DNA of 64,000 nucleotides from assembly GCF_963853765.1 (NCBI RefSeq), contig NC_088855.1, positions 45,198,001 through 45,262,000 of the forward strand, read 5' to 3'. The position numbers and the translations under genes are program-made. The notes beneath the pieces are model-generated. The model had not been told where the DNA came from, ran no database searches, and was given only the letters and a program-made list of their open reading frames with translations. Below, in pieces: positions 27,895-28,578 of the stretch; within the stretch, counting starts at the first letter, position 1; each line of letters starts with the position of its first letter. The stretch comes from Magallana gigas (taxonomy: Eukaryota).

Positions 27895-28578
27895 ATGTCG
27901 CTATCGAGATTCTCTCGATGTGATTCCTGTTTCGTTCGAAGGAATCCAGTTTGGAACTGTAAAACATGCCGCAACTCTATGTGCTATAGCTGCAAGGAAA
28001 CCTGCAACATCTGTCGTGAATCAGTCTGTGGAACCTGCACCCGCAAATGTGAAGATTGTCGTGGCCGGGTCTGCTTCGCATGTAACAGGGTGTGTACATC
28101 TTGTGGTACCCTACTGTGCTCCGACTGCGTGCAGCGATGTAACGACTGCAGCAAGCCCGTGTGTGGATCCTGCCAGGGCCGTTGTATCGACTGTAGGAGT
28201 ACCCTATGCGTCGAATGCGATGTCGGATGCAGGACATGCGACGAGACCGTCTGCTCTTCCTGCTCCCGGACCCGCTCGTGCTGCCTGACTGGGTGCTGCT
28301 ACCGGCACCACTACCACCACAGGTACACACCCCACAGCTGCTGCTCCTCCTATTGCTACATCTGCAACCCGACCCTCAGAATCCGCAGGTCCGTCGATGA
28401 TTGTCTGGATCCACTTTGCTACCACTTCAAGCAGAGTTGCACCGATTGCGGGAGTTTGAAATGCAAACGCTTGATGCGCCGTTGCTACGAATGCCTGACC
28501 CCCCTGTGCTACATTTGTGCTCCTCATTGCAAGGAATGCAGCATTGACCGATCTCTTCGCTTGAAATATCTTTACTGA
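27895..28578 (+). CDS. Intronless Cys-rich orphan protein (227 aa, 49 Cys) with tandem 15-aa CxxC-x4-CxxC-x3 repeats and an HHYHH patch
   Basis: ATG at 27895 (aaaaATGt), open to TGA at 28576-28578. The ORF is GC-rich against AT-rich flanks, and AATAAA follows at 28643-28648. Protein periodicity is strict while nucleotide copies are diverged, which indicates selection on the protein. Confidence 0.8.
   Translation: MSLSRFSRCDSCFVRRNPVWNCKTCRNSMCYSCKETCNICRESVCGTCTRKCEDCRGRVCFACNRVCTSCGTLLCSDCVQRCNDCSKPVCGSCQGRCIDCRSTLCVECDVGCRTCDETVCSSCSRTRSCCLTGCCYRHHYHHRYTPHSCCSSYCYICNPTLRIRRSVDDCLDPLCYHFKQSCTDCGSLKCKRLMRRCYECLTPLCYICAPHCKECSIDRSLRLKYLY

Follow-up and report, generated by a model that had tools for sequence, protein, structure and literature searches.

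The window (the whole stretch of 64,000 nucleotides analysed here) contains an intact reading frame on the forward strand that encodes a cysteine-rich protein. The gene is located on the chromosome-scale contig C3 of the 564 Mb oyster assembly. Its upstream neighbour on the same strand is TRIM37-like (RING exon at about 12307, B-box exon at about 14300, MATH-like exon at 17307-17651), and its downstream neighbour on the opposite strand is a PPM1E-like phosphatase gene (last exon at 33683-35230). Positions 26844-27666 are an interspersed repeat of 823 bp, of which there are more than 1,300 candidate copies (92-94% identity). It stops 86 bp short of the first transcript 5' end, and two CRE-like boxes lie between them. 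The features of the locus are as follows.

27715..27722, + strand: CRE-like palindrome TGACGTCA; together with the box at 27740 it makes up the pair of GACGTCATAAT.AC boxes of a short promoter interval (from the sequence)
27740..27747, + strand: second CRE-like box, CGACGTCA (from the sequence)
27752..29028, + strand: unspliced transcript at its greatest extent (a whole RNA-type contig placed on the genome)
27895..28578, + strand: coding sequence for 227 amino acids and a stop codon (intact reading frame, ATG at 27895, stop at 28576-28578)
27919..27930, + strand: lone N-terminal CxxC knuckle, C9-DS-C12 (sequence reading)
27958..28272, + strand: seven perfect 15-residue units CxxC-x4-CxxC-x3, residues 22-126 (exact register in the translation)
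28273..28401, + strand: linker with three CC doublets and an HHYHH patch, residues 127-169 (sequence reading)
28402..28539, + strand: C-terminal mini-array, residues 170-215; its looser units begin at 182, 197 and 212 (from the sequence)
28643..28648, + strand: proximal AATAAA signal (from the sequence; all three RNA contigs extend beyond it)
28905..28910, + strand: distal AATAAA signal (from the sequence; in run X5 the contig stops at 28924)

Reads and contigs of four sequencing runs were compared with positions 25600-30600. Three runs were contig-bearing (X10, recorded as RNA, and X1 and X5, guessed to be RNA), and the three unspliced contigs spanned 27752-29028 (1277 nt), 27794-28924 (1131 nt) and 27800-28855 (1057 nt). 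All of them matched the genome collinearly, without a mismatch or a gap, and the CRE-like palindrome at 27715 lies 30-85 nt upstream of their 5' ends. In the three contig-bearing runs the depth was zero in 26101-26768 and 29107-30275, so the contigs were not carried-over genomic DNA. The stranded polyA run X21 contained few reads of the gene, and their first mates were exclusively on the - strand, which indicates RNA of the + strand. A 5'-UTR intron had been suspected at 27805-27889 from its GT/AG sites, and it was rejected because the three RNA contigs run collinearly across it. No read or contig joint in the four runs connected the gene to upstream exons.

The complete coding sequence was also present in small, transcriptome-sized contig sets from 12 studies, with six runs recorded as RNA. 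Other samples of the same 12 studies contained none of the words of the coding sequence, and this sample-to-sample presence and absence points to regulated expression. The sequence-only reading had staked its proposal on transcription, and the contigs and the 12 studies showed that the gene is transcribed. Our results showed that the locus is a real, independent, transcribed and intronless gene.

The encoded protein of about 26 kDa contains 49 Cys (21.6%), 26 Arg and 16 aromatic residues (11 Tyr, 4 Phe, 1 Trp), with 20 overlapping CxxC motifs. Position 8 of the seven perfect units is M/V/V/L/V/L/V, position 5 is Arg in four of the seven, and none of the seven has a His ligand. The linker has its CC doublets at residues 130/131, 135/136 and 149/150; residues 139-143 form the HHYHH patch. 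This architecture, as first described from the letters, was verified in every detail: the counts of Cys and CxxC, the exact register, position 8, the doublets, the His patch and the looser units. The proposed absence of a signal peptide agrees with the N-terminal sequence, in which no hydrophobic stretch was seen on reading. By Pfam and sequence reading, the array stands alone without any other domain.

Tandem Repeats Finder reported no tandem DNA repeat in the gene, and the DNA identity among the seven units was only 33-58%, yet every Cys was retained. The repeat is therefore old rather than the product of a recent DNA duplication, and the cysteines and position 8 were kept while the remainder of the units diverged. 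A profile search of the 564 Mb assembly indicated a single-copy gene with no paralogue. The second genome match, at C10:36228147, was a 24-nt minisatellite translating to CNVCEQTI repeats, and was discarded as a false paralogue.

The base composition of the gene is also unusual. The reading frame has 53% GC versus 35% in the flanks, its GC3 is 0.64 versus 0.36-0.49 in the neighbouring exons, and its CpG o/e is 0.85-0.91 versus 0.41-0.52 in those exons and 0.50 in the window. It might be argued that the frame is a chance one within a non-coding transcript, or an assembly artefact, given that neither annotated homologues nor curated family matches were found. This is almost certainly not the case. 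No more than 2 consecutive units arose in any of 200,000 residue shuffles, versus 7 in the protein, and the same sequence was assembled independently in many runs. The shift in GC3, the retention of all Cys in units of such divergent DNA and the confident alignment-based model described below also argue against it.

No real match for the protein was obtained in Pfam (E up to 10), NCBIfam, PADLOC, PHROGs or PDB sequences, which bears out the view that it belongs to no named family. An exhaustive phmmer search of 1.84 billion representative proteins gave 57 matches at E <= 1e-3, with E-values from 1.5e-11 to 1e-3 that may be flattered by the composition of Cys-rich repeats. Arrays of 2-14 units with the identical 15-residue period made up 55 of the 57. 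The top two matches (P0001 and P0002, from gecko, labelled 'UNVERIFIED_CONTAM') were spurious, with 1.2% Cys and V/E-rich repeats. Word-indexed protein searches recovered 0 relatives with the single protein, 2 with the alignment and 3 with the relative P0059, a limit of the word index, and a protein-language-model search of ESM Atlas gave scores of 0.76-0.78, below the useful level. An exact-sequence look-up, in which entries for the window's own genome may be missing, returned no entry for the protein.

The carriers of the array are bacteria, archaea and phage-like contigs, and they form at least 55 protein clusters. Names and sources were looked up for 30 of the phmmer matches, and those with names were bacterial or archaeal. 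They include a Lokiarchaeota MAG protein (NHI91328.1), a protein from Deltaproteobacteria MAGs (RME43960.1) and the Bifidobacterium longum proteins WP_259298527.1 and RGL05207.1, the latter named 'Amidoligase enzyme' in UniRef. On one bacterial contig a citrate synthase gene adjoins the relative, and in the bacterial assembly GCA_029821395.1 the adjoining genes encode an AAA ATPase, a SNF2 helicase, DUF2997, DUF1257 and radical SAM proteins. Some relatives are on phage-like contigs with many small co-directional genes. No animal relative was recognised among the matches of this 1.84-billion-protein search. One relative, P0059, looked eukaryote-like by eye: its B-box-like motif is followed by a coiled coil, then by 13 units and finally by a C-terminal domain. 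Pfam made no B-box call for it.

In many of the relatives the array is preceded by a conserved N-terminal domain of 250-300 aa that contains an HPH...C.G motif. As a guess, this domain could be E2-like, given its motif and a ThiF gene two genes downstream. When it was searched as a profile against PDB sequences, nothing was found. Other partners of the array are Amidoligase_2, HerA/DUF87 and Mrr_cat. Some relatives are short too (P0034, for example, has 174 aa and P0042 has 237 aa), and fusion to another domain is thus a common rather than a defining trait of the family. A lone CxxC, usually CxxCG, was invariant before the array in 20 aligned prokaryotic and phage relatives, and the count of lone knuckles at the array ends is blurred by degenerate flanking units.

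None of the relatives' arrays was covered by a curated model in Pfam, NCBIfam, PADLOC or PHROGs, and a full-text literature search found no description of the tandem 15-residue array. On these sequence comparisons, the repeat is common but unnamed in bacteria, archaea and phages, and not unique to the oyster. The earlier label of 'orphan' thus does not hold: identical 15-residue unit arrays occur in the clusters above, and predicted-structure clusters of up to 2,546 members are alike in shape. The sequence identity between the oyster protein and its best relatives was 30-41% and dominated by Cys, so the likeness to the prokaryotic and phage arrays may reflect either common descent or convergence.

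The consensus of 418 units from the family was C-x-x-C-G-x-x-[VLIF]-C-x-[DE]-[C 75% / H 25%]-x3, and position 8 was V/L/I/F in 69% of them. Position 12 alternates between Cys and His, and histidine forms no disulfide, so the conserved residues are better read as metal ligands than as disulfide partners. This bears on one of the proposals of the sequence-only reading, a structural protein of sperm or shell that is crosslinked by disulfides. In a sperm head or tail, for instance, the cysteines would form disulfides between molecules once the protein had been made, as those of protamines or outer dense fibre proteins do. The intronless gene and its Cys-rich and Arg-rich product would suit such a role, as would the presence of the coding sequence in some samples and its absence from others. 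The two CRE-like boxes just upstream of the transcript start would also suit it; in mammals CRE-like boxes drive spermatid genes. However, the strict CxxC geometry and the 25% of His at position 12 speak for metal ligands, and the proteins related to it come from prokaryotes and phages. We consider a crosslinked structural protein to be quite improbable.

The fold was predicted with AlphaFold2. From the single sequence no usable model was obtained (pLDDT 32). With a family alignment of 56 array segments of relatives, which share little beyond the Cys and position 8, the pLDDT was 79 overall, 92-98 for residues 21-110 and 87-89 for residues 171-210. The CC/His linker was poorly modelled (pLDDT 49-52). 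The predicted secondary structure follows the 15-residue period: in each unit, positions 7-9 and positions 13-15 form strands, and a helical turn occupies positions 10-12. In the model the first CxxC forms the turn between two strands, and the second CxxC lies in the helical turn. Across two units, the modelled order of knuckle, hairpin and helix is that of a treble clef.

We compared this model with solved structures. Foldseek against the PDB gave nothing at E <= 1e-3, and its weak rows were all zinc modules (LIM, FYVE, RBR, CHY and TFIIH), with a FYVE probability of 0.97-0.99. In a structure search independent of Foldseek, the best solved matches were FYVE and FYVE-related fingers, with middling Z scores of 5.4-6.7 (below 8) over 50-54 residues, followed by PHD and RING fingers. 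The FYVE matches fell on model residues 79-134; the six best had an rmsd of 2.2-2.8 Å, and the others had values up to 4.9 Å. The C-terminal mini-array weakly matched an AN1-type finger (Z 3.9). No solved chain fitted more than about 60 residues well in this search. Predicted models of ESM Atlas, by comparison, aligned over 132-150 residues at an rmsd of 2.9-4.4 Å; they included bacterial clusters of up to 2,546 members, archaeal HerA/DUF87 ATPases, Mrr nucleases and phage amidoligases.

The likeness of CxxC-x4-CxxC to B-box and treble-clef fingers, first noted from spacing, is borne out in structure by these FYVE, PHD and RING-type matches. The folded multi-zinc 'staircase' that was proposed along with it is suggested by the alignment-based model and the fold searches.

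The FYVE alignment places four ligand pairs on C82/85, C97/100, C105/108 and C120/123. In FYVE and B-box fingers the two CxxC of the central motif bind two different zinc ions. The order of secondary structure and the FYVE-aligned ranges of the metal-free model would fit a cross-brace arrangement, in which two Zn ions share four ligand pairs in an interleaved way. From the periodicity of the secondary structure, these ranges and the textbook ligand order of FYVE and treble-clef fingers, we infer a staggered pairing, in which the first CxxC of unit n would join the second CxxC of unit n+1 in coordinating one zinc. On this scheme C82, C85, C105 and C108 would belong to a single site.

The proposed scheme is as follows. 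The product would be a cytosolic protein, chiefly an array of 15-residue zinc-knuckle units. Each unit would place its first CxxC at the tip of a beta-hairpin and its second in a short helical turn, and the hydrophobic residue at position 8 would pack the small core of the unit. Since the units would interlock through the staggered zinc pairing, the array would form one continuous rod rather than separate beads. About 7-8 structural Zn are expected in the N-terminal array, about one per unit, and 2-3 Zn in the C-terminal mini-array, with C182/185 paired with C205/208 and C197/200 with C212/215. The lone C9/C12 may cap the array by pairing with the second CxxC of unit 1, in agreement with the invariant lone CxxC before the arrays of the 20 relatives. 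The CC/His linker may supply the last ligands for unit 7. A different pairing is possible, in which the CxxC-x4-CxxC of one unit binds a single Zn, roughly like a retroviral knuckle.

With a probability of about 60%, we propose that the oyster protein is a folded structural multi-zinc rod that serves as a binding scaffold rather than a metallothionein-like store. The retained hydrophobic position, the aromatics and the confidently predicted hairpins argue for structural zinc, and the array is read as a rigid binding or adaptor surface because the relatives join it to varied domains. In the oyster the array would act alone, as a zinc-stabilised scaffold in the manner of LIM-only proteins and under regulated expression.

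A metal store had also been suggested; in a store or detoxifier of the metallothionein kind, the thiolates would buffer or sequester Zn, Cu or Cd as exchangeable and not structural metal. Like metallothioneins, including the mollusc forms, the oyster protein is very rich in Cys, and its host accumulates metals. The CC doublets and the HHYHH patch lie in a poorly ordered linker, and the expression varies within studies, as it would for an inducible gene. The high CpG o/e of the gene points the same way; in published oyster work, high CpG o/e reportedly accompanies inducible genes. However, metallothioneins are small proteins without aromatics or regular secondary structure, in which CxC, CC and CxxC form metal-thiolate clusters, whereas the oyster protein has a mass of 26 kDa, 16 aromatics and predicted hairpins with single tetrahedral sites. 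None of these metallothionein features (small size, lack of aromatics, CxC/CC clusters, lack of regular structure) was found in it. Its units use CxxC rather than CxC or CC clusters, a hydrophobic core position is kept in all seven units as in most family units, and regular beta-hairpins are modelled with high confidence. Furthermore, the prokaryotic and phage modules sit beside Amidoligase_2, HerA/DUF87 and Mrr_cat, where storage makes little sense. With its aromatics, conserved core position and predicted hairpins, the protein is very doubtful as a metallothionein-like store.

The origin of the gene can be considered apart from its fold. The gene may have been gained horizontally from a bacterium, a phage or a large virus. 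The array would then be left over from a microbial conflict-system module, and the gene would be expressed with no role adapted to its host, or its role would still be evolving. The gene lacks introns, and the 564 Mb assembly contains no paralogue of it. Among the phmmer matches no relative from an animal was recognised and the named ones are bacterial or archaeal, and both GC3 and CpG o/e set the gene apart from the neighbouring exons. On the other hand, at 30-41% Cys-dominated identity no donor can be named, and at least one relative (P0059) may be eukaryotic. The AATAAA polyA signals, the CRE-like boxes and the position between conserved animal genes also argue against a horizontal gain, and the odd composition may simply reflect Cys/Arg-rich coding. 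Absence from annotated animal proteomes is weak evidence, as the look-ups may omit entries for the window's own genome and for very near ones.

We regard horizontal acquisition from a microbe or virus as unlikely but not negligible, and a gained gene with no settled host role as rather improbable. It is likewise a doubtful proposition that the gene is the first recognised animal member of a large and so far undescribed class of continuous cross-braced zinc solenoids from phage and prokaryotic conflict systems, horizontally acquired and domesticated; if so, the protein could for example work as a sensor or a decoy when the oyster responds to viruses or stress. An isolated, intronless and compositionally odd gene in an animal genome raises a question of horizontal transfer that can be tested.

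The structural-rod reading has implications beyond the oyster. Zinc fingers are normally closed beads on a string. Here the central motif of a FYVE or B-box finger seems to be repeated in such a way that every zinc site locks into its neighbour, and the result would be a rod stitched together by metal. An open-ended array of this interlocked type is absent from solved structures, where the matches are limited to about 50 residues. The module was found in dozens of protein clusters, with predicted-structure clusters of up to thousands of members, and none of Pfam, NCBIfam, PADLOC and PHROGs has a model for it. The oyster protein is compact, domain-free and expressed, and is therefore convenient for determining the structure and zinc stoichiometry of the class.

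Among known systems, the FYVE finger ('HHCRxCGxxFCxxC') and the centre of the B-box share the unit motif CxxC-G-x-x-Φ-CxxC with the oyster protein. Like the related Rab-effector fingers, FYVE belongs to the cross-brace treble-clef class, together with PHD, RING and B-box. The FYVE domain, with its 60-70 residues and two Zn, is closed, whereas the oyster motif is iterated at least 7 times and is open-ended. The FYVE (PF01363) signatures WxxD, R(R/K)HHCR and RVC are absent from the oyster protein, which has no Pfam match. The B-box (PF00643) comprises about 40 residues with eight ligands, of which the oyster protein shares only the inner C-x2-C-x4-C-x2-C. The full B-box pattern (C-x2-[CH]-x7-10-C-x2-[CD]-x4-C-x2-C-x3-6-H-x2-4-H) is present in the genuine B-box exon of the TRIM37-like neighbour at about 14300, and hmmscan against Pfam at E up to 10 found neither FYVE nor B-box in the oyster protein.

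The LIM-only proteins LMO2, PINCH and FHL2, like the oyster array, present tandem zinc modules as an elongated interaction surface, and they gave the longest solved alignments (97-126 aligned columns). Their rmsd of 7-11 Å indicates that the LIM fold differs from the oyster model, so the analogy is functional only. LIM modules are sequential rather than cross-braced, and each has about 55 residues, CCHC and CCCC/H/D sites and loops of 16-23 residues. The LIM (PF00412) spacing C-x2-C-x16-23-H-x2-C-x2-C-x2-C-x16-21-C-x2-[CHD] is absent from the oyster protein, and Pfam returned no match to it.

The closest likeness is to the prokaryotic and phage arrays, which have in common with the oyster protein the period, the Cys spacing C-x2-C-x4-C-x2-[C/H]-x3 and the hydrophobic position 8. 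In the relatives, Gly is favoured at position 5 of the unit and Asp/Glu at position 11, and 25% of the units carry His at position 12, whereas the seven oyster units lack His ligands. The prokaryotic and phage arrays mostly stand beside another domain, whereas in the oyster protein the array stands alone. In conclusion, our results suggested that the oyster protein is an animal member, or a look-alike, of a large uncharacterised class of zinc arrays.

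The Cys-rich gene is flanked by a TRIM37-like gene on one side and a PPM1E-like phosphatase, represented by its last exon, on the other.
12307-17651, + strand: TRIM37-like gene (RING exon near 12307, B-box exon near 14300, MATH-like exon 17307-17651)
33683-35230, - strand: last exon of the PPM1E-like phosphatase
TRIM37 and PPM1E are adjacent in human 17q22-23 too, and the neighbourhood around the Cys-rich gene may therefore be an old synteny. The B-box in the upstream gene may be a coincidence.

The base composition of the Cys-rich gene (27895-28578) was compared with that of 17307-17651, 20375-20776 and 33683-35230. 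Its CpG o/e was 0.85-0.91, showing no depletion, whereas the neighbouring exons and the window gave 0.41-0.52, and its GC3 was 0.64 versus 0.36-0.49 in the neighbouring exons. The undepleted CpG and raised GC3 therefore mean that the gene either lacks germline methylation or is young or foreign.

Two features were found in the DNA just upstream.
26844-27666: interspersed repeat of 823 bp with sharp ends
27715-27747: two CRE-like copies of GACGTCATAAT.AC (TGACGTCA and CGACGTCA), 25 bp apart
The repeat has more than 1,300 first-look candidates in the oyster genome, the 40 copies that were scored match it along their full length at 92-94% identity, and it is abundant in RNA runs on both strands. 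Its end is separated by 86 bp from the downstream transcript start of the Cys-rich gene, and the CRE-like pair lies in the sole non-repeat DNA from this transposon copy to that start. On the other side of the gene, stranded polyA reads of run X21 return at 30276-30600. Their first mates map to the - strand and so indicate + strand RNA, but downstream of the Cys-rich gene no gene on the + strand was recognised.

Besides the Cys-rich gene, the sole profile match in the oyster genome (L005 1489-1818, C10:36228147-36228443) was an artefact. It is a 24-nt minisatellite, one reading frame of which gives (CNVCEQTI)n and mimics a CxxC repeat protein. P0001 and P0002 from Gekko kuhli (UNVERIFIED_CONTAM), which ranked first in phmmer (E 3.7e-33 and 3.5e-14), were also false positives, in which 10-14 weak stretches were summed. 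Both are repeat proteins rich in V/E/G, and Cys makes up 1.2% of their residues.

Array relatives were found in other genomes and metagenomes.
L009 1853-9549: P0014, a 771-aa array protein, NCBI assembly GCA_029821395.1
L006 122-1825: P0059/P0005, metagenome contig
L002 8001-10930: P0006, phage-like metagenome contig
The gene for P0014 belongs to a row of co-directional genes that also encodes an AAA ATPase, an SNF2/DEAD helicase, DUF2997 and DUF1257 proteins and a radical SAM protein, and this row may be a conflict-system operon. P0059/P0005 has a B-box-like motif (CNH...YCENCKKLYCLDC) ahead of a coiled coil, then 13 Lys-rich units of the 15-residue type seen in the Cys-rich protein, and a C-terminal domain with no family match. 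By eye it looks like a eukaryotic protein; a Pfam search recognised no part of it, the B-box-like motif included.

The N-terminal domain of P0006, marked by an invariant HPH...C.G motif, is followed by a conserved L.TYN..SPY...W motif and then by 12 zinc-knuckle units. The contig carries many small co-directional genes, with a ThiF (E1-like) gene two genes downstream of P0006. The HPH...C.G motif is reminiscent of HPN...C in ubiquitin E2 enzymes; when PDB sequences were searched with a profile, this E2 likeness of the N-terminal domain was not confirmed.
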